Positions 11,113-49,375 of a stretch of 64,000 nucleotides of DNA are shown in pieces; positions within the stretch are counted from its first letter, which is position 1, and every line of letters starts with the position of its first letter. The DNA is taken from the NCBI GenBank assembly GCA_002269645.1, contig NIVC01000419.1, forward strand, positions 124,001 to 188,000, written 5' to 3'. The DNA comes from Macrostomum lignano (taxonomy: Eukaryota). The notes under the pieces are model-generated. The model searched no databases, was not told where the DNA came from, and saw only the letters and a list, made by a program, of their open reading frames with translations. The translations under genes were made by a program, and so were the position numbers.

Positions 11113-11326
11113 TCATTTATTTATTCTACAAAAAATAACTAGGTCTATAATTCATCCTAATCTTTATATATTGTCAGCTTGAATTTTTATCAATCTATCA
11201 AAATATTTCTATATAAGGAACTTTTTTTCCAGTTGCTGAAAAATCCAGCAGTTACTAAGGCATCAAGTGGAAGCAGTTCGGCTTACAACTGGATACTTTC
11301 ATCTATCCACCACTATTCAGGCCATT

Positions 11327-13238
11327 ATGCAGCTGCTTCAGCTGCCATGGCATGATGTACTTTTTGAACACATTTTATCCTGTCTTGATTTGCAAGACCT
11401 GCTTAACCTAAGAAAAGTTTCTTTTTTGGCAAGGTAAGATAGAGATGTGAATTTTTAATGCTATAAGTTTGTAAAATAATTTCTAAGTGAAGTCTAAGAC
11501 TTGCTAGATAATTGGAAAGGTAGCCTTCCAATCTGCGTTATAACTTATGTAGGTAGATAATTGATGTGATGTTTAATTGATGTTTATTCACTGAAGTCAA
11601 TGAGAAACTTTGCATAGGCTCAAAGGGGAGTTTCTGAGATGCCAATGTTTGAAAGGGGAGTTGCTGAGATGCCACGGCTAAAAAATAGTTGCTGAGAAGA
11701 TGCCGAGTCTTAAAAGGGGAGTTGCTGAGATGCCACGGCTAAAAATAGTTGCTGAGAAGATGCCGAGTCTTAAAAGGGGAGTTGCTGAGATGCCACGGCT
11801 AAAAAATAGTTGCTGATATGCCAAGGCTAAAAAATAGTTGCTGAGATGCCAAGGCTAAAAAATAGTTGCTGAGATGCCATGACTTAATGGGGACTTGCTG
11901 AGATGCCATGGCTCAATGTGGAGTTGCTGAGATGCCAAGGATCAATGGGGAGTTGCTGAGATGCCATGGCTCAATGTAGAGTTGCTGAGATGCCAAGGAT
12001 CAATAGGGAGTTGCTGATATGCGAAGGCTCAATGGGGGGTTGCTGAGATGGTTAAGCTCAGGGGGGGGGGTTCTGAGATGCAAAGGCCCAAAGGTTGGGG
12101 GTTGCTGAGATGCCATGGCTCATTGCTCAATGGAGAGTTGCTTAAATGGCATGGCTCAAATCGAGATGGCTGAGATTCTAAGGCTCAATGGGGAGTTGCT
12201 GAGATTCTAAGGCTCAATGGGGAGTTGCTGAGATGTCATAGGCGATGTCTGTTAACTGAATCTCGCTTATGTAATATCCGTTACAGTAATAATGATTTTT
12301 CTGTAGCGTTTCAGCACTGCTAAGTAAGGACTAACAAGACACAATGTGAGCAGTGCCTATCCTGTGTGAGATTGGGCTCAGAAATCAGCATAATGCTTCC
12401 TAAGGAATAAAAAAACTGTCATTGTTATTCTTTTCGGCTGGCTAATATTCTTTTTTTCCACCTTGCAAATCTTTGCAGGCAATTAGTAGACGATTATTGC
12501 GCCTGCTCAATGCGTTCGCTAGACGCTCGTGTAGCCTTTGATAACTCCGGCTACCGATTGGATAGTTGCGCATTTCGCGTATTGGCTAACAGATGCTGCA
12601 GTCTGCGCTTGCTCAGGTTTCACTCTCAGCATAGTTGGCTTGTTGACCAACTGCTAGTTCCAGTCATTCACTCCAATGTACACCTGCAAGCTGTCTACTT
12701 AGATCAGGCTCATTGGTTAACAGACTCTTCCGTGCAGGCGCTGGCCTCAGCTTGTCCTCAGTTGACCCATCTATCACTGCGCGATTGTCACTGGCTGTCA
12801 AGTTCAGGTTTAGAAATTATTGGCTCAGCTTGGCCAGACTTATCTACCTTAGATTTGACCTGCTGTTGGCAGATTGACGATCCGGGATTGTCCGCGTTGC
12901 TAACCGGTTGTCAACGCCTCGAACAGCTTAGCGTTGCTAAGTGCTACGGTTTAACAGACGAGTCGCTGTTGAATCTGCGCAGCAACAAGTGTCTAATGGA
13001 GCTGGACATGACGGGTTGCTGGCGCATCACCGATAGTTTGCTTGAACAATTGACCGAGTTCTGTCGCTCATTGAAACAACTAAAAATTCGCGAGTGCTCA
13101 AGAGTGAGTCTGGCTGCAATTGATCGGCTACAGAAGAAACGGATTGTCACTGATTTGAAACCGCCGGCAGCTTATCGCCTGTTTGCCGCTGTTGATCATA
13201 ATGGCTACCCTATGCCGCAGTTGAATGTGCAGATTTGA
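11327..13238 (+). CDS. FBXL15: F-box/LRR protein 15, 2 exons (11327-11433, 12479-13238)
   Basis: Exon 1 encodes the F-box LLQLPWHDVLFEHIL...LLNLRKVS. Exon 2 encodes Cys-containing LRRs (CPQLTHLSLRDCHWL, LDLTCCWQI, LDMTGCWRI) and ends PQLNVQI like FBXL15. AG|GTAAG donor, TTTGCAG acceptor, phase 2. Confidence 0.85.
11620..12240. repeat. Intronic minisatellite, variable ~33-40 bp units with core GGGAGTTGCTGAGATGCCA
   Basis: About 17 tandem degenerate copies inside the FBXL15 intron. Confidence 0.9.
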
Positions 13239-14395: not shown

Positions 14396-14479
14396 TATGA
14401 TACTATCTGTTTTTATTTATAAAAAAGTATAGTTTGCATCATTAAACATTTCTGCTAAGCTTTGCTTACCTAGTCTAAC

Positions 14480-16027
14480 ATGAGACGCAGGGATCGTTCG
14501 CGTTCGCCAGTAGTGTCTCTGTCTCGCAGGGGCCGTAGGTCCCGCAGCCCGCCGCCTCTCCCTCGCAATCGAGATCGGGACCGGCCTCGAGATCGGCAAC
14601 CTCGCGGCGTCGACCAGAAGCCTCTGGTGGAGAGCAACAAGCAGGCCATCGATCGTGAGAAGACCTGTCCGCTGCTGCTGCGAGTGTTCTGCTCCATTAA
14701 GCGGCATCATTCACTGACTGAGTTCACCCAGGGTCGAACTCCGTCTAATGAACTGCAGATTTATACTTGGATGGATGCTACGCTGAAGGAGCTGTCGCAG
14801 CTTGTGCAGGAGGTATGTTTTGTTTTTTAGTTGTTTACATTAAAATGAACGGAGTTTATTGTGGATTTTGTGGATTGTGGATTGGCGATTTTTTTACCAA
14901 AGGGCGATTTATATTGAAGATTTTTTGAGAATAAGGCGATTCATATTGTTGATTATCTGACCTCAAGGGGCGATTTATATTGGCAATTATCTGACCACAA
15001 GGGGCGATTATCTGAGCATAGGGGCCGATTTTTATTGGCGGTTATCTAAGAATGGAGGGCGATTATCTGAGCATGAAGGGCGATTATCTGAGCATGGAGG
15101 GCGATTATCTGAGCATGAAGGGAGATTATCTGAGCATGGAGGGCGATTATCTGAGCATGGAGGGAGACTATCTGAGCATGGAGGGCGATTATCTAAGCAT
15201 TGAGGGCGATTATCTGAGCATTGGGGCAATTATCTGAGCATGGAGGGCGATTATCTGAGCATGGAGGGCGATTATCTGAGCATGGAGGGCGATTATCTGA
15301 GCATGAAGGGAGATTATCTGAGCATGGAGGGCGATTATCTGAGCATGAAGGGAGATTATCTAAGCATGGAGGGCGATTATCTAAGCATGGAGGGCGATTA
15401 TCTGAGCATTGGGGCAATTATCTGAGCATGAAAGGAGATTATCTGAGCATGGAGGGCGATTATCTGAGCATGGAGGGCGATTATCTGAGCATGGAGGGCG
15501 ATTATCTGAGCATGGGGGGCTATTTATCTGAGCATTGGGGCAATTATCTGAGCATTGGGGGGGGCGATTATCTGAGCATCGGGGCAATTATCTGAGCATC
15601 GGGCGATTTGTATTGGGTATTATGTGAGCATAAAGAGTGATTTATATAGGCAATTTTTTAGCATAGGGCGATTTATATTGGCAACTGTATCTGTAAAGCA
15701 AAACGTTCTGTCCACCCAAATTCCTCTTCATAGGTAAACCCGGACTCCCGAGCCAAGGGCACCTATTTTGACTTTGCCGTAGTCTATCCCGACCTTCAAA
15801 CGACCCGCTACAAATCGCGCGACATCGGCACCGTGCGCAACGGCACCCGCGGCATGGACGACAATGTCACTCTGAAGGATCGGCGATTTCGTATCGGCGA
15901 TTATTTGGACATTTCTATCTGTCCTGACGAGCGGACCGGCGGGGATCGGGATCGGGACCGGGACCGGGACGCAGGTCGGCATCGACGGGACGACAGTCGC
16001 GATCGGGGCGGAGGCCGAAGGCGTTGA
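14480..16027 (+). CDS. SAP18: Sin3-associated polypeptide 18 (ASAP/PSAP subunit) with RS/RD-rich N- and C-terminal extensions; exons 14480-14812, 15734-16027; ~208 aa
   Basis: IDREKTCPLLLRVF, NELQIYTWMDATLKEL, KGTYFDFAVVYP and FRIGDYLDISI are SAP18 ubiquitin-like fold motifs. GAG|GTATG donor, CATAG acceptor, phase 0. Confidence 0.95.
14900..15660. repeat. Intronic 21-bp minisatellite GGAGGGCGATTATCTGAGCAT
   Basis: Fills most of the SAP18 intron and degenerates toward both edges. Explains the EGDYLSM-repeat ORFs. Confidence 0.95.
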
Positions 16028-16184: not shown

Positions 16185-16975
16185 CTGAAAATTGGGATTA
16201 TAGTCCCAACCGGAAGCTGATAATTGGGATTAGAATACAATGAAATCCCAACCGGAAGCTGATAATTGGGATTAGAATACAATGAAATCCCAACCAGAAG
16301 CTGACAATAGGGATTAGAATACAATGATATCCCAACCGGAAGCTGATAATTGGAATTAGAATACAATGAAATCCCAACCGGAAGCTGACAATTGGGATTA
16401 GAATACAATGAAATCCCAACCGGAAGCTGACAATTGGGATTAGAATACAATGAAATCCCAACCGGAAGCTGACAATTGGGATTAGAATACAAATAAAATC
16501 ACAGCCGGAAGCTGACAATTGGGATTAGAATACAAATAAAATCACAGCCGGAAGCTGACAATTGGGATTAGAATACAAATAAAATCACAACCGGAAGCTG
16601 ACAATTGGGGTTAGAATACAATGAAATCCCAACCGGAAGCTGACAATTGGGGTTAGAATACAATGAAATCCCAACCGGTAGCTGACAATTGGGATTAGAA
16701 TACAATGAAATCCCAACCGGTAGCTGACAATTGGGATTAGAATACAATGAAATCCCAACCGGTAGCTGACAATTGGGATTAGAATACAATGAAATCCCAA
16801 CCGGTAGCTGACAATTGGGATTAGAATACAATGAAATCCCAACCGTTAGCTGACAATTGGGATTAGAATACAATGAAATCCCAACCGGTAGCTGACAATT
16901 GGGATTAGAATACAATGAAATCCCAACCGGTAGCTGACAATTGGGATTAGAATACAATGATATCCCAACCGGAAG
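16185..16975. repeat. 42-bp minisatellite CCGG(A/T)AGCTGACAATTGGGATTAGAATACAATGAAATCCCAA
   Basis: About 19 copies downstream of the SAP18 stop. Each unit has an internal inverted repeat TTGGGATT/AATCCCAA. Confidence 0.95.
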
Positions 16976-17873
16976 GGGACAACAGGGATTAAAATGAGAG
17001 GAAGTACCAGCCGGGACTGGGAAGTGGGGTTATAGTAAGATCGAATTCCAATGAGAAGTTGACAGATTTCTATCTACTTCAGAAGTTCCATTAGAATCGT
17101 ATGCGCACTCAACCACCGACTCTTCACTTGTGTTGTTAATGTACTTTTGTATGCTTAAATAATAATAACTAATCTGTCAACTAAGAATGACACGGCTTTA
17201 CAGCATAGGATGCTATTAAGAGTACAATAAATGCCTTTGCTGGGCCCGTGCTTAAGCGCATTTTTTATAGTAGGACTTTTAAAGTACATTTATTTGGCAT
17301 TCGTTTGAATTAATTAAGCTACTGTTTGTTAAGCATATTGATGACTGTTAGACTGATTCAAATGCTTAAGAAATATTAGGGGTTTGTTAAGGAAATTAAC
17401 TAGATATGCTACCGATAGTAAGTAGTATTCTTATGTAATTGAAAATTATTTCAATATAAAATTTGATGGCAATTAAAATATATCTTCAATACTGGTGTCG
17501 CTTTTTAGTAACTACTACTAAGTAACTAGTGTGGGCCTTGGTTTTCTTTATTTGTCTGTTACCAGCAAAATAGCTGCAGTAAATATCTACAGGGCTTTTG
17601 TGTTAGTCATCGGGATTCAGCAAGGAAGCAAGCAGACATACCCGTAACCCTGACTCATCGTGTGGGTACACTCCAACTACTGCCTATTTCGCTGACTGCT
17701 GAATACATACAAGCTCGCCAATACTTGCAGGGTGTACAGTGGCCTTTTGACTTTCTTATCGGTCAGGCATGTACACTCTGTGTCTTGAAAAGTGGGCTCT
17801 GATAGGTGCGAATCGCTCATTTATTCCTTTCACGAGCATCAAATGAAAAACTTTCTACTTTCAATAGAGTATA

Positions 17874-18135
17874 GGTTGTAGCCTATAGTGGTTAGAGCGT
17901 CGGACTCACCGACTTGAAGGTCGGGGGTTCGATTCCCGATCCCACTCGGACCAATTTGTGTCCTTGAGCAGGACACTTGATTCTCTGCATTGCTTCAGTT
18001 CAATCGGCTGTAAAATGGGTGCCGGTGTGTGTGGTGAACCCCCCCCTCCCCATTCCTTGGACTGAACAGCCGTACGCAGCCTTTAGATTAGCCTATTAGG
18101 GCAGGTGCAATCAATATTATTAATTTGTTATTATA
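17874..18135 (+). mobile_element. tRNA-derived SINE with CORE-like central domain
   Basis: A-box-like TAGTGGTTAGAGCG and B-box GGTTCGATTCC, followed by GTGTCCTTGAGCAGGACACTT...CTGTAAAATGGGT (resembles the CORE domain) and an AT-rich tail. No acceptor-stem pairing, so not a tRNA gene. Confidence 0.7.
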
Positions 18136-18158
18136 TCAATAGCGCACAAATTCAGTAG

Positions 18159-19669
18159 TATGTATCCAATGGCCAACAATTTCTGGCTGCAACAGCCCTC
18201 GGCCTGGGGCTGGAGCGGCCCTCTCGGGTTCGGCAAACAGCCGCCCCAGTTGACGTCACCGGAGTGAGCTTTCAATGCTACAGTACGGAGGAAATTCGTC
18301 GACTGTCAGTGAAAGAGATTAACCGTGTGGAGACATTTGACAGATTGACAGGCTACAGGCTGGACTTTGGTCTGTACGATCCCGATCTGGGTCCGCTGGA
18401 CGAGCGGGACGTATGCAGAAAATGCAGTTTAGGCTACTGGCAGTGCGGCGGCCATTTTGGCCATATTGAACTGTTCAGCCCGGTACTGCATCCGATGTTC
18501 TTCGATCTGGTGTTCAAACTAATCAGAGCCAAGTGCTTCTATTGTCACAGATTTGCTGTTAAATTAGATTTTAGACGATTGGTTCGACTGCAGTTCTTAG
18601 CGTTAGGCCTGTCTGATGAGAGCAACCCGCTGCTGTTGGCTGATCAGCTGGCTTCTATCTATGCTGCTCATCACAGTGTCAGGTGCGTAGATTTGTTATT
18701 TTATTATTTAATCTCTATCCGATGCAAAAATAAGACTTTCTAAGAAACGCCTCTATCCGTTACAAAATAAAATTTTCTAAGAAATGCCCCCATCCGTTAT
18801 AAAAATAAGGCTTTCTAAGAAATGCCCCTATCCGTTACAAAAATAAAGAATTTCTAAGAAACGCCTCTGTTAAAAAACAAGACTTTCTAAGAAACGCAAC
18901 TATCTGTTACAAAATAAGACTTTCTAAGAAACACCTATCCGTTGCAAAAATAAGACTTTCTATAAACGCCTTTATGTTTTAAAACATCGTAAGACTTTCT
19001 TAGAAACGCCTTTATCTGTTTCAAAACATCGTAAGACTTTCTAAGAAACGCCCGTACCCATTTAATTATCAATTATGTTTCTAAGAAACATCTGTCTGTT
19101 TTGAAACAATCCTTTCTAGGAAACGCCCGTACCCATTTCATTGCCAATGATGCTTCTAAAAAGCGCCATTTCTAAGAAAATGGCCCTATTTTTTAATAAA
19201 CAAACTGTCTATAGAAATTATCTATCCCTATTCCGTATTTTCTTTTAAAAATGAATTGATAAATTTTGTTTAGCTTCATGGCCATCAAATCCCATTCGAA
19301 GTTTTCCTTTCGATAAAAATTTGCCGTTTATTCTTTCAGAGAAGCAAGCGCCAATCGAAAGGCACAAAACGATGGCGAAGAGTTTACTGGCGATATTGAC
19401 GAGGAGCTGGTGAAGGAGGCTGAGTCGGGTGCCAGATCTACTGACATCGGCTGTCTGGACCGGCTGCAGGTGGGTCGGGCAAACACTGAGGCACTTAGAC
19501 AGATACAACACTTGTAAGACAGACGGGCAGACACTAAGACAGATACAAGACACTAAGACAGACAGACAGACAGACAGACAGGCAGACAGATAGACAGACA
19601 TTAAGACATACAGAGAGACAGGCAGGCAGGCAGGCAGACAGACAGACAGAGAGACAGACAAAGACACTA

Positions 19670-19706
<37 letters not shown>

Positions 19707-19896
19707 GGCAGGCAGACAGACAGACAGACAGACAGGCAGGCAGACAGACAGACAGACAGACAGACAGACGACAGACAGACAGACAGACACAGACAGACAG
19801 ACAGACAGACGACAGACAGACAGACGACAGACAGACAGACAGGCAGTCAGACAGACATTAAGACAGACAGACAGACAGGCAGTCAGACGGACATTA

Positions 19897-19971
<75 letters not shown>

Positions 19972-20014
19972 GAGACAGACAAAGACACTAAGACAGGCAG
20001 GCAGGCAGGCAGGC

Positions 20015-20079
<65 letters not shown>

Positions 20080-23000
20080 GGCAAAGACACTAAGACATAC
20101 AGGCAGGCAAGCAGGCAGGCAGACAAACTGACTGACTTAATCAGAGATAGACGGTTTAAGACACCAGGAACACAAGCGGACACTGAGACTGAGACAAAGA
20201 CAGGAACAGTTGATATTCAAAAAGAAGTCAGTGAAGTTCCTTGAATAATTTCAATACCCCGATCCCAACAACAAAACGCAGATGGCATTCGACGCGGCCG
20301 TAGCTTCGCCGAGCCGGCGCCGGCAGCCGCAGCCAACTCCGGGCATCGTACACATGCGCCGGGTTGAACTAGCCAAATCCGTCATGCACCTGTTGACCTC
20401 CCGAGCCAAAGGCAAATGCCCGCATTGCGGCTGCCGCAAGCCCGGCCTGCAGCACAAGCACAAGGCCGATGTCTACTTGGCCTCGGCCAGGTCCGGGTAC
20501 ACCGAGTCCCCGATGCTCCGCGCCAGCCGCCTAGCCAGCAATGTCGATGAGCTGATCGACACTATTGTCGAAGAAGGTCATCATCAGTCGTTGCTACCCG
20601 ACGATGGCAACGAAAATGCAGTCGAAAATGTCGCTCCGTCGCTTCTAGACGACACTCTGACCGCTGTGCTGGCCGAAGCCGCCGCCGAAGCCAAGGCCGC
20701 CGAGCCGCTCGACGCTGCGTCGTTGGCGGCGGCCGGCGGAGCGTCGACTGCCGACGGTTCGACAGTTGGACACGAGTCGCGAGTCCTGACGCCGCTAGTG
20801 CTGCGCGATCACCTGCGCTGCTTGTGGACGGAAGAATGGGAGATCCTCGGCGCCCTGTTCCCCTGCCTGACAACCGGCCAGTCGCGGGGTCGCCAGTATC
20901 CCACCGACCTGTTCTTCCTTGAGGTCATGCCGGTGCCGCCGCCCATTTGCCGGCCGCCGGGTCACGTGTCGCCGAACAGTCCGCTGATTGAGCATCCGGA
21001 GACCTCCAATTTGTCCAGCGTCCTGCGTCGGTCTCTGGATTTGTCAGCGATTGTGCGGGACTCGCTGTTTGAGGCCTCTCAGCCTGCCAAGTGGCATGCC
21101 AGTCACGTGCAGGTTGGTCATCTATCTGCCTGTCTATCTGCCTATCTGCCTAACTATTTTCCTGTTTATCTGCCTGTCTATCTGCCTGCCTATCTGCCTG
21201 TCTATCTGCCCATCTATCTGCCTATTTATCTGCCTATCTATCTGCCTATCTATCTGCCTATTTACTTGCCCATCTATCTGCCTATTTATCTACCTATCTA
21301 TCTGCCTGCTTATCTTCCTATCTATCTGTGCAAGCATCCATTTGGCAGGTTATCCAGTTATCTGTGCTACCAATAGTTTTGTTTATTTAAGAACTGTCAA
21401 TATAAACTCATCAATTCTGTTCTCTCCCGCCGCAGGCCACGGTGGCTCTGCAGAAGGCTGTCAACGCCTGCTACGACAGCCGACTGTCCGACATTGGTCA
21501 GGCTGCCGCGCCCGGACTCAAACAGCGGTTGGAGAAGAAGGAGGGCCTGCTAAGAATGCACATGATGGGTATTATGAGAATGGGTTTTATGTGTCTGTTT
21601 AATCTACTGATTTAAAGCTAGTATACAATTCATGCTTATATTTCTAACTTGGCTTGATGGGCAGATTATTTTTGTAACAGATATAGGCGTTTCTTAGAAA
21701 GTCTTATTCTTGTAACAGATAGGGGCGTTTCTTAGAAAGTCTTATTTTTGTAATAGATAGGGAGTTTCTTAGAAAGTCTTTTTTTGTAACAGATATAGGC
21801 GTTTTTTAGAAAGTCTTATTTAGATTTTTATAAGGGATAGGGCCTCTCTTAGAAAGTATTATTTTTGTAACGGATAGAGGCCTCTCTTAGAAAGTCTTAT
21901 TTTTGTAACGGATAGAGGCCCCTCTTAGAAAGTCTTATTTTTGTAACGGATAGAGGCCCCTCTTAGAAAGTCTTATTTTTGTAACGGATAAAGGCCCCTC
22001 TTAGAAAGTCTTATTTTTGTAACGGATAGAGGCCTCTCTTAAAAAGTCTTATTTTTGTAACGGATAGAGGCCTCTCTTAGAAAGTCTTATTTTTGTAACG
22101 GATAGAGGCCCCTCTTAGAAAGTCTTATTTTTGTAACGGATAAAGGCCCCTCTTAGAAAGTCTTATTTTTGTAACGGATAGAGGCCTCTCTTAAAAAGTC
22201 TTATTTTTGTAACGGATAGAGGCCCCTCTTAGAAAGTCTTATTTTTGTAACGGATAAACGCCCCTCTTAGAAAGTCTTATTTTTTGTAACGGATAGAGGC
22301 CTCTCTTAGAAAGTCTTATTTTTGTAACGGATAGAGGCCCCTCTTAGAAAGTCTTATTTTTGTAACGGATAGGGGCCTCTCTTAGAAAGTCCTATTTTTG
22401 TAACGGATATGGGCCCCTCTTAAAAAGTCTTATTTTTGTAAGGGATAGAGGCGTTTCTTAGAAAGTCTTATTTTTGTAACGGATAGAGGCGTTTCTTAGA
22501 AAGTCTTATTTTTGTAAGGGATAGAGGCGTTTCTTAGAAAGTCTTATTTTTGTAAGGGATAGAGGCGTTTCTTAGAAAGTCTTATTTTTGTAACGGATAG
22601 AGGCGTTTCTTAGAATCTTATCTCGGAACATTTCTAGAAATCGTCTTTTTAAATATGATTTTTTAAGGGCCATTCTTTTAGCAAAATGCATAGCTGTTTC
22701 TCGGAAATACCCCTTTAAATATAACCTTTCGTAGAAAGCACCTTTTGAAACATAACCATTTCTACGAAAATGTATTGTGTACGAGCTAACTACGATTAGT
22801 TCTAAGAAACTTGAACAACCACCATAAACCCTGAAACCCTTTTCTTCTAAGATTATTGTACTCGTACGATCACTTCTTCTAAGAAACAGCGAAATCCGGT
22901 TAAAGAAAAAACATTTCTCAGAAAACGTCCCAGTTGATTTTAACAAAAAACTGTTTCTAAGAAACTTCCTCATCCATATCAATCTCCTATCCTCACGCGC

Positions 23001-26000
23001 CGCAGGCAAGCGCGTGAATTTCGCCTGCCGCTCCGTGATCTCACCGGATCCGCTGATGCGAGTTGATGAAGTCGGCATTCCGGCCGTGTTCGCCCGCCGG
23101 CTCAGCTTCCCCGAAGAGGTCACCCCGTTTAATATCGATCGCCTCCGACGCATGGTTGCCAACGGACAGGACCGACATCCGGGTGCCAATGCCATTGTTA
23201 AGCCCGATGGCAGCGTCGTGCCGCTGACTCATTGTTCAAGAAAACTGCGAGCCGCTTTGGCTAGCGACCTGCGGCCTAGCCAGGGCAGGACGGGGCCTTG
23301 GACTGTGCTGAGGCACCTGTGCGATACCGACTATTTGATTATGAATAGGCAGCCCACCTTGCATAGGCCTAGTATGCAGGGTCACAAGGTTCGCGTGTTG
23401 CCTAATCCGCCTAAGTGAGTTTTTTGTCTGCAGTTTTTCCTTTGTTTCTTCGCCAGGTTCTAGAAATTCTTTCTGAGTGTTTTTAGTGTCTTGGGTGCAA
23501 TCTGGGTGTGTATTGTGTAAGCTGGTGTCTATGGCGTAATCTGGGTGTCTATGGCGTGATCTGGGTGTCTATGGTGTAAGCTGGGTGTCTATGGCGTAAG
23601 CTGGGTGTCTATGGCGTAAGCTGGGTGTCTATGGCGTAAGCTGGGTGTCTATGGTGTAAGCTGGGTGTCTATGGCGTAAGCTGGGTGTCTATGGTGTAAG
23701 CTGGGTGTCTATGGTGTAATCTGGTGTCTATGGCGTAAGCTGGGTGTCTATGGTGTAATCTGGGTGTCTAATGTGTAATCTGGGTTTCTAATATGTAATA
23801 TGGGTGTCTATTGTGTATTGTGTAATATGTTTTGCGGTGTGTACTCTAGTTATCTGTATTGTGTAATATTGATGGCTTTAGCATCATCTGATTGTCTGCA
23901 ATGCAAAACCTGACTGTCTGTAATGCAACACCTGACTGTCTGTAATGCAACACCTGACTGTCTGTAATGCAACACCTGACTGTCTGTAATGCAACACCTG
24001 ACTGTCTGTAATGCAACACCTGACTGTCTGTAATGCAACACCTGACTGTCTGTAATGCAACACCTGACTGTCTGTAATGCAACACCTGACTGTCTGTAAT
24101 GCAACACCTGACTGTCTGTAATGCAACACCTGACTGTCTGTAATGCAACACCTGACTGTCTGTAATGCAACACCTGATGGCTTATTCAAACTGCCTCTGG
24201 TATCCAACAGAAGCCGCCCGCTCCGCACAATCCGCCTGCACTATTCGGCATGCAAAGCTTACAACGCCGATTTCGATGGTGACGAAATGAACGGCCACTG
24301 CGTTCAGAGCCTGCCAGCCATGGCCGAAGTGAAGCAGCTAATGGCCGCTCCTAATCATTACCTGGCGCCGAAAGATGGCAGCCCTCTGGGCGGTCTCATT
24401 CAGGTAAGTTATGATTGTGCTTTTCACAATGGCTTTCACAATACTTTAGTTTTGATCAATTCGTTCAAAACGATACTGTGTTTTCTCCCCCAACCCAATC
24501 TCAGGATCACGTGATCGCCACAGTGAAGCTCTCCTGGATCAATCGTTTCCTATCTCGCGAAGACTATTTCCAGCTGGTGTGGGAGGGCCTCGACGCTTTA
24601 GAGACGCCGCGACAGTCGGCGATTAAAACTCTGCCGCCAACTATTTATCGAATCCGGCACAGTAGGAAAGGTCGGCGTCGGGTTCAGTGTCTGTGGACTG
24701 GGAAACAGGTTAGTTGAGATGTTTCACTTCTTGCTATTCAGTCTACCCGATGCTGTAGTAGATTGTTATCCACTCTACCCGATGCTGTAGTATATTGTTA
24801 TCCACTCTAACTAATGCTGTAGTAGATTGCTATCCACTCTACCCGATGCTGTAGTAGATTGCTATCCACTCTAACTAATGCTGTAGTAGATTGCTATCCA
24901 CTCTACCCGATGCTGTAGTAGATTGTTATCCACTCTAACTAATGCTGTAGTAGATTGCTATTCACTCTACCCGATGCTGTAGTAGGTTGTTATCCACTCT
25001 ACCTAATGCTGTAGTAGATTGCTATTCACTCTACCTGATGCTGTAGTAGATTGTTATCCACTCTACCCGATGCTGTAGTAGATTGTTAAAACTCTACCTG
25101 ATGCTGTAGTAGATTGTTATACACTCTACCTGGTGCTATAGTAGTCTACCAGATCATTTAATAGATAAGCACCCAGTTTACCATATCATCTGGTAGATCA
25201 GCACCCAGTCTACCAGAGCAGCTAGCAGATCAGCACCCAGTATACCAGAGCAGCTAGTAGATCGACACCAGGTCATATATCAGTACACACGTGTGCATCT
25301 CAATCCATCCTCCATCCATGCAGGTATTCTCCACCATACTTATCAACCTGGTGCCCAATGGCCAGCCACTGCCGAACATCAGCTTACCCGGGCGTCGTAT
25401 GAAAGCGGAACTGTGGTCCGGCAAGGGCGATCCGACCTCGCTATCCATGTCTGATGTGGATCTGCTGGTACGCCAGGGCGAGCTGCTCACAGGCATATTG
25501 GACAAGGCGCATGTCGGGGCCGCCAGCTACAGCCTGGTGCACGCTATGCACGAACTGTACGGCCCGCAGACAGCTGCCGACCTGCTGTCGGCCATCAGCC
25601 GGGTAGCCAATAGCGGACTTAGAAGCGTCGGTTTCACGCTGGGCCTAAAAGATCTCATTGTTGATCCGAGCGCCGACAGGAGGCGAAGGCGAGTGTTCAG
25701 CAAAGTTGACAGGGAAGGCGTGAAAGCTGCCAGGGCCGCTATGGGCATTGCGCCAGAGCTGCTGACTCCCGCCAGTCTGAAGTCCGCTCTGCGTGCTGCT
25801 CACTTTGATCCGGTGGAGGGCGCCAGGAAGCAGGTGAGGGGTTTGCGGTGTTTGGCCTGCGATTGTGTGTCTTGACATGTATAACTGTGTCTGTCTGGGT
25901 GTGTCTGTCTGACTGTGTCTGTCTGACTGTGTCTGTCTGGCTGTGTCTGTCTGACTGTGTCTGTCTGGGTGTGTCTGTCTGGGTGTGTCTGTCTGACTGT

Positions 26001-29000
26001 GTCTGTCTGACTGTGTCTGTCTGGGTGTGTCTGTCTGACTGTGTCTGTCTGACTGTGTCTGTCTGGCTGTGTCTGTCTGACTGTGTCTGTCTGACTGTGT
26101 CTGTCTGACTGTGTCTGGTTGTCTGTGTCTGTCTGGCTGTGTCTGTCTGACTGTGTCTGTCTGACTGTGTCTGTCTGACTGTGTCTGGTTGTCTGTGTCT
26201 GTCTGACTGTGTCTGTCTGGCTGTGTCTGTCTGACTGTGTCTGTCTGGCTGTGTCTGTCTGACTGTGTCTGTCTGACTGTGTCTGGTTGTCTGTGTCTGT
26301 CTGACTGTGTCTGTCTGGCTGTGTCTGTCTGACTGTGTCTGTCTGACTGTGTCTGTCTGACTGTGTCTGTCTGACTGTGTCTGGTTGTCTGTGTCTGTCT
26401 GACTGTGTCTGTCTGGCTGTGTCTGTCTGACTGTGTCTGTCTGATTGTGTCTGTCTGGCTGTGTCTGTCTGACTGTGTCTGTCTGGCTGTGTCTGTCTGA
26501 CTGTGTCTGTCTGACTGTCTGGTTGACTGTGTCTGTATGATTGTGTCTGGTTGACTGTGTCTGGTTGACTGTGTCTGGTTGTCTGTGTCTGTCTGGCTGT
26601 GTCTGTCTGGCTGTGTCTGTCTGGCTGTGTCTGTCTGACTGTGTCTGGTTGTCTGTGTCTGGTTGTCTGTGTCTGGTTGTCTGTGTCTGTCTGACTGTGT
26701 CTGGTTGTCTGTGTTTGTCTGACTGTGTCTGTCTGACTGTCTGGTTGTCTGTGTCTGTCTGACTGTGTCTGTCTGACTGTGTCTGTCTGGCTGTGTCTGT
26801 CTGGCTGTGTCTGGTTGACTGTGTCTGTCTGGCTGTGTCTGTCTGGCTGTGTCTGGTTGACTGTTTCTGTCTGACTGTGTCTGTCTGGCTGTGTCTGTCT
26901 GGCTGTGTCTGTCTGGCTGTGTCTGTCTGACTGTCTGGTTGACTGTGTCTGTCTAACTGTGTCTGTCTGACTGTGTCCGTCTGACTGTGTCTGTCTGACT
27001 GTGTCTGTCTGACTGTGTCTGTCTGACTGTGTCTGGTTGACTGTGTCTGTCTGACTGTTTGTATAACTGTCTGATTGACTTTAAGACTGTGTCTATCTGT
27101 GTCTGGTTGACTGTGTCTCTGTTTCTCTTATTGCGTGCCTGTCTGCCTGCCTGCCTGCTTACCTCCCGTTAATAAAGCGCCTGAATCTCCCACACAGATG
27201 GAACTGGACGCCACGGTGACCTCCAGAGTGAAGTCGCTGCAAGACCGCGTGTGCGAGGAGCTGATGCCCGGCCGCCTGATGGTCCCGTTCCCGGCCAACA
27301 ACCTGCAGCTGATGATCCACTCCGGCGCCAAAGGCAGCCAAGTGAACGCCCAGCAAATGTCCGTAGCTCTGGGCCAAATCGAAATCGAAGGCCGTCGAAT
27401 GGCGCCAACTTTGTCCGGTCGAACCTTGCCGTCGTTTCCAGCGTACGACACGCATCCACGAGCTGGCGGTTTCTGCTCCGCCAGATTCCTCACCGGCCTG
27501 CCGCCGCAGGAGCTGTTCTTCCACACAATGGCAGGTCGGGACGGGCTTATTGATACGGCCGTGAAAACCTCTCGATCCGGCTATCTGCAGCGTAGCTTAA
27601 TTAAACACCTGGAAGGCTTGGCGGTGCAGTACGACTTGTCGGTGCGCAACTCCGATGGTAGTATTGTGCAGTTTCTCTACGGCGAAGACGGCTTGGACGT
27701 GGCTAAGACTCCGTTTCTGCAGCCGGCTCGATTAGATCTGTTTGCCGACAATTGCCAGCTGTTTGCTAATCGGACTGGTCTGGGGGTGAGCTGTCCTGAC
27801 TGTTCCTTATGGCGCTTTTTGTGATCCTAATGGCGCTTCTTTGTGATCCTAATGGCGCTTCTTTGTGGTACTAATGGCTCTTCTTTATTATCCTAATGGC
27901 GCTTCTTTGTGATCCTAATGGCTCTTCTTTATTATCCTAATGGCGCTTCTTTGTGATCCTAATGGCTCTTCTTTATTATCCTAATGGCGCTTCTTTGTGA
28001 TCCTAATGGCTCTTAATTTTGATCCTAATGGCGCTTCTTTATTATCCTAATGGCTCTTCTTTATTATCCTAATGGCGCTTCTTTGTGATCCTAATGGCTC
28101 TTCTTTATTATCCTAATGGCGCTTCTTTGTGATCCTAATGGCTCTTCTTTATTATCCTAATGGCGCTTCTTTGTGATCCTAATGGCTCTTCTTTATTATC
28201 CTAATGGCGCTTCTTTGTGATCCTAATGGCTCTTCTTTATTATCCTAATGGCGCTTCTTTGTGATCCTAATGGCTCTTAATTTTGATCCTAATGGCGCTT
28301 CTTTGTGATCCTAATGGCTCTTCTTTATTATCCTAATGGCGCTTCTTTGTGATCCTAATGGCTCTTAATTTTGATCCTAATGGCGCTTCTTTATTATCCT
28401 AATGGCTCTTCTTTATTATCCTAATGGCGCTTCTTTGTGATCCTAATGGCTCTTCTTTATTATCCTAATGGCGCTTCTTTGTGGTACTAATAGATCTTCT
28501 TTATTATCCTAATGGCGCTTCTTTATTATCCTAATGGCTCTTCTTTATTATCCTAATGGCGCTTCTCTGTGATCCTAATGGCTCTTCTTTGTGATCCTAA
28601 TGGCTCTTCTTTGTGATCCTAATGGCGCTTCTTTGCTATCCTAATGGCTCTTCTTTGTGATCCTAATGGCTCTTCTTTATTATCCTAATGGCGCTTCTTT
28701 GTGATCCTAATAGCTCTTCTTTGTGATCCTAATGGCGCTTCTTTATGATCCTAATGGCTCTTAATTTTGATCCTAATGGCTCTTAATTTTGATCCAAATG
28801 GCGCTTAATTTTGATCCTAATGCAGGGGTCGGCAAAGGTTTTAATCTACTTGCGGTCAGAGGTGGGGAGAAAGAGAGAGAAATAAGGAAGATAAGATCTC
28901 CACCCCTCTAGCTGCTGCTTAAACAAATTTCTTCCCAATTAATATTATCATCTTCATAATTCCTAACCCACCGCAGACCAAACTCGAAGCCGACCAAGAA

Positions 29001-32000
29001 GATCCCACCGATTGGTTCGGCGTCAATCCCAATTATAACAATTCCAAATCGTTGCGACGTGACTGGCGCCTGGCCCGGCGCGAGACCCGATTGAGCACCA
29101 GAGAGTCTCGCATCGCCGAGGTTCTGCAGCTTGACGCCGAAGATGACAACCAGTACTACAGTGTCCGGCGGTCTACCGCCTGTCCGGTGCTGTCCAAGCA
29201 TCCGCCTCATCTGGTGCTGGGCTCGGTGTCCGAGTCCTACCGCGACACCGTGCTCAAATATGCCGAGAAAAGATTCACGGATGCCGATCAGAGCAGCACC
29301 GCTGAACAGTTTCAACGCCTGATGTGGCACCGGGCTCGAGCTTCGCTAGTCGATCCGGGCGAATGCGTCGGCCTGCTGGCATCACAGAGTATCGGCGAGC
29401 CATCAACTCAGATGACGTTGAATACGTTTCATTTTGCTGGCCGCGGCGAGGTCAACGTGACGCTTGGTAATTTGTGTTTCTAAGAAGGCACAGAGAGTGT
29501 ACAAGCCAGGGCCGATGTACATGTACACCCTGTGTGAGCCTGCGTTGTCTGCTCCCCGTTGAAAACGTGACAAGACTCTTTTAAGTCTTGGTCGGCTCTT
29601 TCGCTATTCTACAACTTCCACTTAGCGACTCCTATTGCGGTAAAAAAAACTTGTTCAATACTCCCAATCTCTACAGGTATACCTAGACTACGAGAAGTGC
29701 TCATGACCGGCTCGGAGACAATTAAAACTCCTCTAATGGTGCTCAAAGTATTGCCGCACGTGCCCGACTCGCCAGAGCTTAGCCATCGATTGGAGCAGCT
29801 TATTCGGCGGTTTAACAAGGTTCTACTTGGCGAATTACTGCAACAGATCAGCGCCACTCATCTGCACATGCAGCGGGCGCTTAAATTCACTTTTCAATTT
29901 AAACGCCGATCAGCCTATAAAGCCAAAACTTTTCTGCGGCCTGAACAGGTTTGAAATTTTATTACTATTCAACAAAAGTTCCACTTCCGGTTCGATAAAA
30001 TATAGTTTCTATTTCTTTACAACTTCGAATTCTTATCCACTAGTCCCTTCTGATCCGCTACTGATTACACTTCCGGTCCGCTAATACAGATTACACTTCC
30101 GGTAGGCTAATACAGATTACACTTCCGGTCTGCTAATGACGTAGATTACACTTCCGATCCGCTAATATAGATTACACTTCCGGTGCGCTAATGTAGATTA
30201 CACTTCCGGTCCGCTAATATAGATTACACTTCCGGTTCGCTAATGCAGATTACACTTCCGGTGCGCTAATGTATATTACACTTCCGGTCCGCTAATATAG
30301 ATTACACTTCCGGTCCGCTAATATAGATTACACTTCCGGTCCGCTAATATAGATTACACTTCCGGTCCGCTAATGCAGATTACACTCCGGTCCGCTAATA
30401 TAGATTGCACTTCCGGTCCGCTAATGCAGATTACACTTCCGGTCCGCTAATGCAGCTTACACTTCCGGTTTGCTAATGCAGCTTACACTTCCGGTTTGCT
30501 AATGCAGATTACACTTCCGATCCGCTAATGCAGATTACACTTCCGGTCCGCTAATGCAGCTTACACTTCCGGTTTGCTAATGCAGATTACACTTCCGGTC
30601 CGCTAATAAAGATTACACTTCCGGTCCGCTAATATAGATTACACTTCCGGTCCGCTAATGCAGATAACACTTCCGGTCCGCTAATGTAGATTAAACTTCC
30701 GGTCCGCTAATGCAGATTACACTTCCGGTCCGTAAATGTAGATTATACTTCCGGTTGCTAATGCAGATTGTACCTCCGGTCCGATAATTCAGATTGCACT
30801 TCTAATCCGATACTGATTTGACTTGCGGTTCGCTAATAATTACTCACTTCTGATATCCTACAAACCGCCCCTCCCAATATTCCATTTGTTTTCAGGCCAT
30901 GCGCTTTATCGAAACGAAATTCCTGCCTCGTCTAGCCAAAGAAATCGAAGTCCGCGTCAAAGAACGCGTCTCCGAGTCCGTGCTCCGAGCTCTGGCCAAT
31001 GCGGCCTCCGACATTGTCGGCGGGGGCGGCGGGGGCGGAGTCGCTGACGACATGATGAACGACGTTGACCGTCGACACGGCAACGGCAACAACAAGACTG
31101 AAGCCGAGGACGAAGACTATCGCGAATTCGAAGCCGAGGACGCCGAGCGATCTGAGCTGCTAGCCGAAGGCTTGGCCGTCAGCGACGCTGAGGAAGGCGA
31201 CGAAGATGTTGACGACATGCCTGGCGGCGAGCATCGACCAGCGGCAACTGTTCGCGGCGAACCGTCGCTGGAGCCGCGTCGAGTCTTCGACGGCTCTGCT
31301 GCTGCGGCGGCGGCGGCAGCGGCGGCGGCTGCCGACGAAGAATCAGACGGTGGAATCGGCGACACGGCTGCCGCTGCAGCGGACGACTCGAAGAAGGCGT
31401 CAACTGGGCTGAACGCCGACGAGCGAGTCGGCATGGTGAAGAAGCTGCATCCCGCCTTTCTCAACTACTCATTCGATGCTGGTAAACATCGGAGCTGCGA
31501 GCTGACCGTGGCGCTCAAGGATATTGAAGGTCGGCTGGATTTGGCCAGTCTGGTTGGTCAGCTGGCCGAGAGCAGCGTGGTGCACAAAGCGCCGAAGGTT
31601 GGTGCAGATTGTTTTCTTCCACTACTTCCCTGATAATCTCCAGTCTCTTCTCTGATAATCATCCCCACTTTCTTAGAATAGTCCTAGGAAGAGACCCTTT
31701 TAAGAGCCAATCTGACCCTAAACTACCCTTTTAAGAGCCAATCTGACCCTAAACTACCCTTGTAAGAATCAATCTGACCCTAAACTACCCTTGTAAGAAT
31801 CAATCTGACCCTAAACTACCCTTGTAAGAATCAATCTGACCCTAAACTACCCTTGTAAGAATCAATCTGACCCTAAACTACCCTTGTAAGAATCAATCTG
31901 ACCCTAAACTACCCTTGTAAGAATCAATCTGACCCTAAACTACCCTTGTAAGAATCAATCTGACCCTAAACTACCCTTGTAAGAATCAATCTGACCCTAA

Positions 32001-33223
32001 ACTACCCTTTTAAGAATCAATCTGACCCTAAACTACCCTTTTAAGAGCCAATCTGACCCTAAACTACCCTTTTAAGAGCCAATCTGACCCTAAACTACCC
32101 TTTTAAGAGCCAATCTGACCCTAAACTACCCTTGTAAGAATCAATCTGACCCTAAACTACCCTTGTAAGAATCAATCTGACCCTAAACTACCCTTGTAAG
32201 AATCAATCTGACCCTAAACTACCCTTGTAAGAATCAATCTGACCCTAAACTACCCTTGTAAGAATCAATCTGACCCTAAACTACCCTTGTAAGAATCAAT
32301 CTGACCCTAAACTACCCTTGTAAGAATCAATTTGACCCTAAACTACCCTTGTAAGAATCAATCTGACCCTAAACTACCCTTTTAAGAATCAATCTGACCC
32401 TAAACTACCCTCTTGAGAATAGCCCTGACTCTCGATTCAGATTCCTAAGAATCGCTCCATGAATCAACAACCCCATTAAAATCCCGAACTCTACAATGCA
32501 CCTGTCCAGGTGGAACGAGCCAGCCTAGACAAGTCCAAACTGCCCTGGATACTCCGCGTCGAAGGCGTCAACCTGGATTTAGTTCGTCCGCACAGCGACT
32601 TGCTTGATTTAAACTCCGCCTACACCAACAACATCCGGGTGATGCAGTCCGCCTACGGCATCGAAGCCGCCGCCAGTTGTATCGTTCGCGAAATTCGCGA
32701 CGTATTTAAGCACTACGGCATCGGGGTGGACCCGCGCCATCTCAGCCTGGTGTCGGACTACATGACCAACAGCGGCACCTATCTGGCGTTCAGTCGCCAC
32801 GGCATGATCGGCCAGCCGTCCGCTCTGCAGCGAATGTCGTTCGAGACTTCGTCGGTGGTGCTGAAAGACGCCGTGCTGGCCGCCGCTCGAGACGACATGC
32901 GGTCGCCGTCGGCTTGCATCATGGCTGGCAGGCCGCCCGTAGCCTGCGGCACCGGCTCGTTCGACCTGTTGCACCTGTTGCCGTTGAGCGCTAAAAAGTC
33001 CAAAGGCGCCGAGTCTGTCCGACTTGGCCCAGTCGAGGCCGTGTCGATGGGCCGGGCCGGTGACAAGTCGGCCGCTGACAAGTCGAAACAGATTTTATCG
33101 CCGAAGCAGCAACACCATCGGCATCGCCATGGTAATAAAATTGTTAGCAAGTCCAAACAAGAACCTATCGATCAGGTGGTGCTTGATCACGAAGATGAAG
33201 CTCTGCTGCTGAGCTCGGATTGA
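18159..33223 (+). CDS. POLR1A: RNA polymerase I largest subunit; exons ~18159-18682, 19340-19469, 20282-21112, 21436-21568, 23006-23414, 24211-24403, 24505-24708, 25324-25833, 27198-27785, 28977-29466, 29677-29948, 30896-31597, 32510-33223
   Basis: Zn motif CRKC...[10 protein letters not shown]; [13 protein letters not shown]|[14 protein letters not shown]; catalytic [10 protein letters not shown] (24263-24292); [24 protein letters not shown]; [18 protein letters not shown]; QRMSFETS...GTGSFDL. The acidic insert and ends are Pol I type. All 12 introns are GT-AG and phase-consistent. The start codon is unresolved. Confidence 0.95.
18727..19190 (+). repeat. ~38-bp minisatellite AAGACTTTCTAAGAAACGCCTCTATCCGTTACAAAAAT (POLR1A intron 1)
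   Basis: About 10 increasingly degenerate copies. Same family as 21668-22615 but in opposite orientation. Confidence 0.9.
19490..20130. repeat. (GACA/GGCA)n microsatellite (POLR1A intron 2)
   Basis: Directly visible. Explains the VCLS-repeat ORF at 19245-20183. Confidence 0.95.
21121..21365. repeat. (TATCTGCC/TGTC)-type 12-bp degenerate repeat (POLR1A intron 3)
   Basis: Directly visible. Explains the IYLP-repeat read-through of the ORF at 20282. Confidence 0.9.
21668..22615 (-). repeat. 38-bp minisatellite TTATTTTTGTAACGGATAGAGGCCCCTCTTAGAAAGTC (POLR1A intron 4)
   Basis: About 24 copies; reverse complement of the intron 1 array. Confidence 0.95.
23495..23800. repeat. 20-bp minisatellite GTAAGCTGGGTGTCTATGGC (POLR1A intron 5, 5' half)
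   Basis: About 14 tandem copies. Confidence 0.93.
23905..24177. repeat. 22-bp minisatellite CACCTGACTGTCTGTAATGCAA (POLR1A intron 5, 3' half)
   Basis: About 12 essentially identical copies ending ~33 nt before the acceptor. Confidence 0.95.
24740..25140. repeat. 32-bp minisatellite GATGCTGTAGTAGATTGTTATCCACTCTACCC (POLR1A intron 7)
   Basis: About 12 copies. Confidence 0.93.
25870..27125. repeat. TGTC-rich 10/14-bp compound repeat (CTGACTGTGTCTGT) (POLR1A intron 8)
   Basis: Fills almost the whole intron. Confidence 0.95.
27815..28820. repeat. 22-bp minisatellite with alternating variants TCCTAATGGCGCTTCTTTGTGA / TCCTAATGGCTCTTCTTTATTA (POLR1A intron 9)
   Basis: About 45 units with 44-bp higher-order periodicity. 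Confidence 0.95.
30045..30810. repeat. 26-bp minisatellite GATTACACTTCCGGTCCGCTAAT(AT/GC)A (POLR1A intron 11)
   Basis: About 29 copies. Confidence 0.95.
31700..32410. repeat. 31-bp minisatellite AATCTGACCCTAAACTACCCTTGTAAGAATC (POLR1A intron 12)
   Basis: About 23 copies. Confidence 0.95.
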
Positions 33224-34532
33224 TAAATCAATGCCTTGAAACTATAATAAAAATCCATCTTAATTGATAGTCGATTTAATAAGTGAAGCGAGTCCAGTCA
33301 ATTAAAGTACTTTTAATATAATATACTAGTAATCATTTTTAACCTGCATTTTATTGCGTTGCGTTCATCTATATTGTTGTTTCCCATTTGTTTATGATTA
33401 CTTATAACAATTTCCCGAAAGAAATCATGTCTCTGGTTGTTAGGTTTCGAATTGGTTTTGTTGCTTGAAAGAAAATGGAAAAAAACGTTGGTCAACCCTT
33501 TTTTTCCTCAAAGGCGCGTGCATTTTGGTGCGAAAAATCTTATCTAAGAGATTTCACTGCGTCTTCGATGGCAACATGTTGCTGTCTTTTTTGGATTAAA
33601 GTTTCCGTGTGTTTTTCTTTTATTTCTTTTCCTAGTTTAAAGGGCAAACTTCTTTACCTGAAGGTTCAGAGAGAAGGATAAGAGAAAAGATAAGAAGAGA
33701 TAAATCGAGGGAAGAGGGGGATAGAAGACGAAGAGAGCTGCGAAGACACACACAGACCTTGAGCGGGTCGTATTGTTAATGTAAAGTGTCAAGGGACCCC
33801 CCGAGAGATGCTTTGCAGCAATTGCGGGCCCACGGGCTGGTCCATAGAAGGCTATAAGACTGCTTTTGCTTTTTAACAAAGTAAATATAATAGAATGCTT
33901 ATATTCAAACTAGACACATGGGGCCGTATGCAGAAAGCCTGGTCCAGACTAGCTAGTCTGGACTTGGGTAGTTCAGTCTATAGTCTATGGTCTAGCTACC
34001 CTAGTTCTGCTATAGTAGACTGATCTAACTTTGTGTTTCTGCATACCAAATCCAAGTCTAGACTAGCTTTTCAAGACCGGACTACCCTAGATTTTAGTAT
34101 CCCGTATATTCAGATAATTCTCTCCCAACCCCAATCCAATAGTGTGTACATTTGTACACCCTCGCATAGGCAACGCAAGCGTGGCGTTTGAGAGAGGTGG
34201 GTGACTCGCCAATCTAAAAATATACTGTTCACTGCTCCTTAGTGTACACTTGCTGCAGCGGGGCGGGGCTAGACTCTAGAAAATAGCTATGTTGCTTTTC
34301 TAAAAGCGAAAATTATGTTTGCACTGTACAGTCAGTTAGTCTATCTTTCTCTATCTTGGTACCTTGTTTAGCGGAAAATTGAAAGCAGAAAGGCTTAGAT
34401 TTTTCTGTTTGAATCCGCCTAGTTAATTGCATTCTTGATATTTAACTTACCCATGCTCCCACCCTCCTCCATTGCAAGGTTCACCGTAAAAAGGCCATAC
34501 TAGAGCCTAATAACTAACAGAGCATTGCACGA

Positions 34533-47519: not shown

Positions 47520-48100
47520 TATGCAGACAGGCAGACAGACAGACAGTCAGACAGAAAGACAGACAGACGACAGACAGAAAGACAGACAGAAAGAAAGAAA
47601 GGAAGGCAGGTAGAAAGACAGGCAGACAGACAGACAGACAGACAGACAGACAGGCAGGCAGATAGACAGAAAGACAGGCAGGCAAACAGACAGACAGACA
47701 GACCGGCAGAAAGCCAGGCAGGCAGACAGACAGCAGAAAGACAGGCAGGCAGACAGACAGACAGAAAGACAGGCAGGCAGACAGACAGACAGAAAGACAG
47801 GCAGGCAGACAGACAGCAGAAAGACAGGCAGGCAGACAGACAGCAGAAAGACAGGCAGGCAGACAGAAAGACAGGCAGGCAGACAGAAAGACAGGCAGGC
47901 AGACAGAAAGACAGGCAGGCAGACAGAAAGACAGGCAGGCAGACAGAAAGACAGGCAGGCAGACAGAAAGACAGGCAGGCAGACAGAAAGACAGGCAGGC
48001 AGACAGAAAGACAGGCAGGCAGACAGAAAGACAGGCAGGCAGACAGAAAGACAGGCAGGCAGACAGAAAGACAGGCAGGCAGACAGAAAGACAGGCATGA
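47520..48100. repeat. (GACA/GGCA)n microsatellite with 20-bp higher-order unit AGACAGAAAGACAGGCAGGC (second copy 50370-50950)
   Basis: Directly visible. Confidence 0.95.
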
Positions 48101-49351: not shown

Positions 49352-49375
49352 TCAGCGGTTGAAAACCTGTCTATC

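Follow-up and report, generated by a model that had tools for sequence, protein, structure and literature searches.

How is translation begun on the mRNA of an essential gene that appears to carry no start codon of its own? This question is raised by POLR1A, which encodes the largest subunit of RNA polymerase I, in the flatworm Macrostomum lignano. The window, meaning the whole stretch of DNA that was analysed, comprises 64,000 nucleotides of contig NIVC01000419.1. Within it, the locus corresponds to Mlig_3_7 scaffold NIVC01000419.1:128480-150027 (L002), such that the window coordinate equals the L002 coordinate plus 4479; the two are identical base for base over 21.5 kb. The features from which the question arises are as follows.

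18189..33223, plus strand: the POLR1A (RNA polymerase I largest subunit) gene as annotated, with a 1889-residue product and no start codon.
18186..18682, plus strand: the constrained part of POLR1A exon 1, with 4 synonymous and 0 non-synonymous differences in the paralog comparison.
18683..18688, plus strand: the donor of intron 1, GTGCGT, whose position was carried over to the window after the annotated paralog protein had been threaded through its own locus.
18160..18267, plus strand: an out-of-frame ORF of 35 codons, with ATG 18160, a second ATG at 18169 and TGA at 18265-67.

Exon 1, which ends at 18682, matches the Pfam domain RNA_pol_Rpb1_1 (PF04997) with an E value of 3.7e-20, the match starting at codon 32 counted from 18159 (about 18252). 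It is also 99% identical to the M. lignano UniProt fragment A0A1I8G8W1. A protein search with the POLR1A exons returned matches named RPA1, which places the gene in the POLR1A/RPA1/A190 family. Over 18240-32980, the locus is collinear with residues 4 to about 1800 of full-length RPA1 homologs, and the ORF of the last exon stops at 33223. Such a collinear full-length alignment indicates that POLR1A is intact and not a pseudogene fragment. The gene has many introns, which are filled with tandem repeats, and several of the intron junctions are ambiguous when the annotated 1889-residue protein is rebuilt. The M. lignano sequences returned by the protein search were only the fragments P0001 and P0011, with no transcript-derived protein, and a search of 50%-representative proteins recovered only the M. 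lignano fragment.

Read from the sequence, a TAG at 18156-58 sits in the POLR1A frame, which is open from 18159 onwards. The first in-frame ATG is not met until 18495 (codon 113, MFFDL). Since this lies downstream of the conserved CxxC...GHFGHIEL zinc motif, a functional protein cannot come from it. The start methionines of the homologs project onto 18216-18243, an interval from which ATG is absent, and the genome offers no in-frame ATG anywhere before the conserved N-terminus. The nearby ATGs at 18160 and 18169 are both in the +1 frame relative to POLR1A, and the overlap of their 35-codon ORF with the POLR1A frame explains why the paralog keeps it. A sequence-only reading of this DNA had already described POLR1A as lacking a usable in-frame ATG, and had placed the ATGs at 18160 and 18169 out of frame in a 35-aa ORF running to 18267; both descriptions are borne out.

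Only two copies of the locus are indexed. The second, referred to here as the paralog, is on Mlig_3_7 contig NIVC01001245.1 (L001); it is about 95% identical overall to the window locus and has the same gene order of F-box, SAP18 and POLR1A. In both assembled copies, POLR1A is annotated without a methionine. The CDS in the window is annotated from L002 13710, which is window 18189, where the codon is GCA and not ATG. The protein record of the paralog, PAA70366.1, carries the label ‘partial’; its opening TALGLG corresponds to a start at window 18192. The annotation pipeline consisted of StringTie, TBONE and TransDecoder applied to RNA-seq data (PMC5730564). A Met-less CDS in both copies therefore implies that this pipeline found neither a start codon nor an upstream exon. 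TransDecoder reports a Met-less ORF only where it reaches the 5' end of the transcript; if this rule holds here, the assembled POLR1A transcripts stop short of the TAG at 18156.

The spliced leader (SL) of M. lignano offers a source for the missing codon. It is 35 nt long, CGGTCTCTTACTGCGAAGACTCAATTTATTGCATG, with an ATG at its 3' end, and the sequence runs ...ATTTATTGCATG and then into a GTAAG donor (PMC8629364). The explanation that best accounts for a Met-less POLR1A, to which we assign a probability of about 0.72, is that the start codon is donated by this leader; both the trans-splicing of the gene and the SL site are inferred from the genomic sequence and its annotation. Under this proposal, the POLR1A mRNA would be SL trans-spliced, the last three bases of the 35-nt leader (...UUGCAUG) would provide the initiator AUG, and the acceptor would have to be in phase 0 with the POLR1A reading frame. 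The genomic start codon would then be absent because the SL AUG serves as the initiator. The sequence-only reading had suggested a leader-derived initiator, and with an ATG at the 3' end of the SL and Met-less annotation of both copies this is now the most likely explanation.

About 30% of M. lignano genes are trans-spliced to one leader, and conserved genes are enriched among them (PMC8629364). All reported flatworm SLs have a 3' AUG and are able to supply a start codon (PMC12582326, PMC9851317); this AUG is an established initiator according to Cheng et al. 2006, as cited in PMC9851317, PMC12582326, PMC7653826 and PMC3510090. In Echinococcus, the SL ATG has to be counted for 143 of 187 SL-bearing clusters to be full length (PMC3510090), and the Macrostomum SL has been remarked to include, probably, the start codon (PMC10468722). 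POLR1A resembles the flatworm genes that use the SL AUG in belonging to the same phylum, in having available an SL that ends in AUG, in lacking its own start before the conserved N-terminus and in possessing phase-0 acceptors. It differs in that use of the SL AUG was shown in Schistosoma (>40 cDNAs) and inferred in cestodes, whereas POLR1A is known only from its sequence and annotation.

Leaders of the M. lignano type were also found in environmental data. An SL RNA gene with ...TTGCATG/GTAAGA (a slash marks a splice junction throughout) is present on metagenome contig L007, and five mRNAs with an M. lignano-type leader come from a metatranscriptome (contigs L003-L006 and L008). These mRNAs encode VDAC, IDH, a CCHC protein, GAPDH and a guanidino kinase. 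A stop follows the SL AUG at 2, 41, 5, 3 and 3 codons, and position +4 is occupied by C, C, U, C and A, never by G; the main ORF starts at its own AUG, 17-108 nt downstream. The SL AUG is thus the start of the main ORF in 0 of 5 Macrostomum-type mRNAs, which indicates that its use is not the default of the genus. In this the five mRNAs contrast with POLR1A, which has no downstream AUG of its own. A search for an SL RNA gene in the window found none, and Rfam and ARAGORN gave no matches over the window, including to a tRNA-like element upstream. The SL tail is not present in the viral contigs, nor is the exact 33-mer of exon 1 present in the metagenome contigs.

A start codon could also be brought in by conventional splicing. 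The region upstream of POLR1A contains the following.

14480..16027, plus strand: SAP18, the upstream same-strand neighbour, with 2 exons and 208 aa, which bounds the 5' region of POLR1A on its upstream side.
16204..16995, plus strand: an array of 18.8 copies of a 42-nt tandem repeat, occupying much of the spacer between SAP18 and POLR1A.
17406..17423, plus strand: a candidate upstream micro-exon, ATG CTA CCG ATA/GTAAGT, in phase 0 and equivalent to paralog 9309-9320.

The SAP18 protein is 100% identical to NCBI BOX15_Mlig016079g4; the gene identifiers Mlig016079 and Mlig016987 are mentioned neither in the literature nor in the supplements of PMC5730564. The ATG of POLR1A might be contributed by an upstream cis-spliced exon, for instance 17406-17417 spliced to an acceptor in phase 0. 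This candidate is followed by a consensus donor, keeps the right phase and is conserved in the paralog. However, about one such candidate per 2.1 kb is expected by chance, and its conservation is no higher than the 95% background identity. In neither copy, moreover, does the RNA-seq-guided annotation include an upstream exon, and the CDS stays 5'-partial in both. An upstream exon is on this evidence decidedly unlikely.

The quality of the assembly bears on a further explanation, which the sequence-only reading had listed as an alternative, namely that a one-base error conceals an in-frame ATG at 18160 or 18169. Mlig_3_7 is a PacBio assembly, and on the paralog contig three single-nucleotide indels (C4 to C3 at the position matching window ~23109, +A/-G at 27575/27611) shift the frame of coding exons, although they look like assembly errors. 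Against this, 18141-18682 is equal in length in the two copies, with six differing positions and no indel, so that two separate loci agree in both length and phase. The longest homopolymer between the ATGs and 18186 is of 3 or fewer bases, and the window contig is free of frameshifts across the collinear homolog alignment. In addition, P0001, a protein model derived from the older ML2 assembly, passes through TTT CAG GCT in the same frame; no contig among those indexed carries P0001. Because both copies are in the same phase, a one-base error at the 5' end is very unlikely despite the indels elsewhere in the paralog, and we give this explanation almost no weight.

Initiation at a near-cognate codon would require no ATG. 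Candidates are the in-frame CTGs at 18183, 18204 and 18210 and the GTG at 18264. CTG 18204, CTG 18210 and GTG 18264 are kept in the paralog, and the codons lie where the start methionines of the homologs project; CTG 18183, however, is CAG in the paralog. Any mRNA that retained 18160-18171 would present two out-of-frame AUGs upstream of these codons, and behind an SL the AUG of the leader would come first. A near-cognate start is therefore highly improbable.

If the leader does donate the start codon, its point of attachment must still be found. Three short features are relevant.

18153..18158, plus strand: CAGTAG, a tandem AG proposed by the sequence-only reading as the SL acceptor pair, identical at 9962-9967 of the paralog locus.
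18159..18185, plus strand: nine open codons, YVSNGQQFL, with 2 substitutions in 27 nt relative to the paralog, both of which change an amino acid.
18180..18185, plus strand: TTTCTG in the window copy and TTTCAG in the paralog, the latter a perfect trans-acceptor motif in phase 0.

The two substitutions in the nine codons are at 18178 (A in the window, C in the paralog; Q>P) and 18184 (T in the window, A in the paralog; L>Q), whereas the differences at 18245, 18360, 18482 and 18632 are all synonymous. Over the 3505 coding nt compared, the copies differ at 13 synonymous and 3 non-synonymous positions. Two amino-acid changes in nine codons exceed this coding rate (P ~2.5e-4, or 0.007 when all substitutions are counted) and are compatible with non-coding divergence of about 5% (P = 0.39). 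The excess of amino-acid change suggests that constraint starts at about 18186; to judge from this pattern, 18159-18185 is probably outron or 5' leader and not constrained coding sequence.

The TTTCAG of the paralog conforms to the motif enriched at trans-acceptors in M. lignano, [T/C]TNCAG (PMC8629364). An SL joined there would read AUG/GCT GCA ACA, giving M-AATALG... in an ORF that stays open to the end of the exon. Phase-0 acceptors without a later stop are, in the window, the TAG preceding 18159 and a poor GGAG preceding 18216, to which the paralog adds the TTTCAG preceding 9995. Polypyrimidine content does not discriminate among candidates, at 0.41-0.53 as against 0.41-0.82 for the cis acceptors of the gene. 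Three independently annotated 5' ends lie no more than about 7 nt from the paralog TTTCAG/GCT junction: the first codon is TTT in P0001, ACA in P0011 and GCA in the window model. None of these ends lies exactly at an AG and they are 3 nt apart between the copies, and they may reflect coverage trimming or multi-mapped reads instead of a true junction. For the gene family, the evidence supports TTTCAG/GCT of the paralog (equivalent to window 18180-85/18186) better than CAGTAG as the candidate acceptor. Splicing at this position would place G at +4 and delete both out-of-frame AUGs, in keeping with the role in removing upstream AUGs that has been proposed for SL trans-splicing (PMC8629364).

The sequence-only reading had gone further and made the CAGTAG a regulatory device. 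In that model, the SL is added at CAGTAG and the choice between its two AGs acts as a switch for Pol I: the distal TAG, ending at 18158, yields a protein beginning M-YVSNGQQ, the proximal CAG, ending at 18155, yields AUG-UAG, and the ratio of the two sets the output. The arithmetic of the junctions is correct, since an SL AUG joined after 18158 does read M-YVSNGQ in frame and remains open to the end of the exon, and joined after 18155 it reads AUG-UAG. The two copies also share every base of the 36 nt from 18141 to 18176, which include the CAGTAG and its surroundings; on the 5' side of this segment they are strongly diverged or rearranged. An ATTCAG likewise precedes the ATG of the neighbouring F-box gene, and the window copy has no good phase-0 option other than the TAG preceding 18159.

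The phase of the distal AG is nevertheless automatic, because this AG is part of the TAG stop that bounds the ORF; any ORF bounded by TAG would have the same property. The additional coincidence at CAGTAG is limited to the preceding CAG (about 1/64), or 1/16 for any NAG. The proximal CAG comes first and is the stronger site, given that 8 of 8 confident cis acceptors of POLR1A are CAG and that CAG is preferred to TAG (PMC2951375), so most of the product would be the dead AUG-UAG form. In the distal product, U would occupy +4 and two out-of-frame AUGs would come 1 and 10 nt later. In both copies the annotation begins the CDS 30-33 nt beyond CAGTAG, and the nine codons that the distal form would add contain the two amino-acid changes described above. 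Nor is an AUG-UAG product by itself a sign of regulation, as Macrostomum-type mRNAs routinely have an early stop behind the SL AUG, after 2-5 codons in 4 of 5 cases.

Known tandem acceptors are instructive in this respect. The same CAGTAG is created in human CFTR by the E831X mutation (Hinzpeter et al. 2010, PMC2951375), where splicing at the proximal site retains the UAG and splicing at the distal site eliminates it. Both sites are used, with the proximal form making up 16% of transcripts and the distal form 8%, a roughly twofold difference (PMC2951375); CAGTAG is a ‘plausible’ tandem acceptor through which a UAG can be added or removed. However, CFTR E831X is a disease mutation in a cis-spliced internal exon, whereas the CAGTAG of POLR1A is a candidate acceptor, and the POLR1A paralog has a better acceptor 27 nt downstream. 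Alternative SL sites of the NAGNAG type occur in the cryptomonad Guillardia theta, in which minor SL sites cluster at +3/-3 from the major site (Roy 2017, PMC5619915). Unlike that of flatworms, the G. theta SL does not donate a start codon, and for about 89% of genes one site accounts for >90% of reads, a pattern that resembles noise and not a switch (PMC5619915). The position of the annotated CDS 30-33 nt downstream, the TTTCAG/GCT of the paralog and the non-coding character of 18159-18185 leave both the specific acceptor and the NAGNAG switch unsupported, and we regard the switch as improbable.

Leader donation at TTTCAG meets a difficulty in the window copy itself. Having no AG at 18184, this copy must either use the distal TAG, be a poorly translated homeolog, or carry a polymorphic or mis-called base at 18184. 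Use of the TAG preceding 18159 by the window copy is possible, though we hold this view only tentatively. Base 18184 may also be polymorphic or mis-called.

It is also conceivable, if somewhat unlikely, that the window copy is a translationally impaired homeolog in which an A-to-T change at 18184 broke the SL acceptor, leaving the TTTCAG copies to carry the function. M. lignano, a hidden polyploid, has duplicated genes (PMC8629364, PMC10468722), and the acceptor differs only as CAG versus CTG. The annotated 5' ends of both copies lie at the paralog junction, as would be expected if reads multi-map. The window copy nevertheless retains an intact 1889-residue ORF, and it is the paralog contig that bears the three frameshifting indels, albeit ones resembling assembly errors. 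The A/T difference could also represent the gain of TTTCAG by the paralog. Purifying selection is evident from the 13 synonymous against 3 non-synonymous differences, though it is not assignable to one lineage.

A more elaborate possibility, which we consider doubtful, is that the homeologs add the SL at different acceptors 27 nt apart, the TAG preceding 18159 in the window copy and TTTCAG in the paralog, with a single A/T difference deciding between them. In the window copy, competition between the dead CAG and the productive TAG would then set the amount of the Pol I large subunit. If this reading is true, both sites are in phase 0 and the leader AUG still starts the protein. The difference in acceptor between the homeologs would provide a small, testable case of reading phase constraining the turnover of SL acceptors.

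Initiation from the flatworm SL AUG is already published, so the central idea advanced here is a mechanism known in the phylum. POLR1A is one more case of a known flatworm class and not a new kind, and understanding of the mechanism itself is unchanged. The practical consequences concern annotation and genetic engineering: genes that depend on the SL AUG are left ‘5'-partial’ in Mlig_3_7, and promoter fusions of such genes in M. lignano transgenes require an added ATG. If leader donation at POLR1A is confirmed, it would add one more example of an essential flatworm gene that is untranslatable without trans-splicing.

The paralogous POLR1A locus on Mlig_3_7 contig NIVC01001245.1 (L001) carries three 1-nt indels relative to the window copy, all of them within strongly conserved exons of the gene:

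L001 15600 (window equivalent ~23109): CCCC in the window, CCC in L001
L001 equivalent of window 27575: an additional A in L001
L001 equivalent of window 27611: loss of a G in L001

The first of these cuts the annotated L001 protein to 601 aa, while the second and third are spaced 36 nt apart and lie inside a single motif of 15 residues. Substitutions between the two copies (13 synonymous, 3 non-synonymous) still show purifying selection and, for this reason, the three indels look like PacBio consensus errors rather than the marks of a pseudogene.

Some 200 nt 5' of POLR1A there is a tRNA-like element:

Window 17876-17952; L001 9780-9856: tRNA-like element (GTAGCCTATAGTGGTTAGAGCG...GGTTCGATTCCCGATCCCACTCGGACCA)

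On its 3' side are an 83-nt segment, found only in the window copy, and a poly-C run. As neither ARAGORN nor Rfam calls a tRNA at window 17876-17952, the element is probably the remnant of a tRNA-derived SINE. Tandem repeats crowd the POLR1A introns and the spacer separating this gene from SAP18:

Window 16204-16995, 18713-19052, 19517-20080 and many other introns: tandem repeats

These include 37/42-nt minisatellites and 143 copies of (AGAC), and they give rise to long spurious ORFs on both strands (e.g. CLSVCLSV..., DRQTDRQ...). A run of N at ~49375-50050 represents a scaffold gap, on either side of which lies a near-identical block of ~1.1 kb (47072-48196 vs 49920-51044); this arrangement probably arose as an artefact where a repeat was assembled. 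Two long coiled-coil ORFs occupy opposite ends of the window:

Window 1090-2133: long coiled-coil ORF
Window 38643-39599: long coiled-coil ORF

Both contain the motif EKRK.E.LYKKLCEQSE.RL; the pair could represent either paralogous exons or a gene that was duplicated locally.

Five mRNA contigs in a public metatranscriptome (L003-L006 and L008, JGI Ga0316592) start with an M. lignano-type spliced leader (SL), and encode VDAC, IDH, a CCHC zinc-finger protein, GAPDH and a guanidino kinase. An SL RNA gene is found on a metagenome contig:

Ga0302322_100095745 (L007), 639-659: SL RNA gene (...TTGCATG/GTAAGA; slash, junction)

A Macrostomum-like flatworm is therefore present in these samples. Each of the five mRNAs begins its main ORF at an AUG of its own; the ORF that starts at the SL AUG is short in every case.

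Three same-strand neighbours of POLR1A have their own ATG, with a candidate phase-0 AG acceptor a few nucleotides 5' of each:

Window 11315-11329, forward strand: F-box/LRR gene, ATTCAG/GCCATT ATG
Window 14468-14482, forward strand: SAP18, CCTAG/TCTAAC ATG
Window 34515-34535, forward strand: coiled-coil gene, AACAG/AGCATTGCACGA ATG

If the SL were joined at these candidate acceptors, its AUG would be in frame with the F-box/LRR, SAP18 and coiled-coil coding sequences, extending each protein by 2-4 residues.
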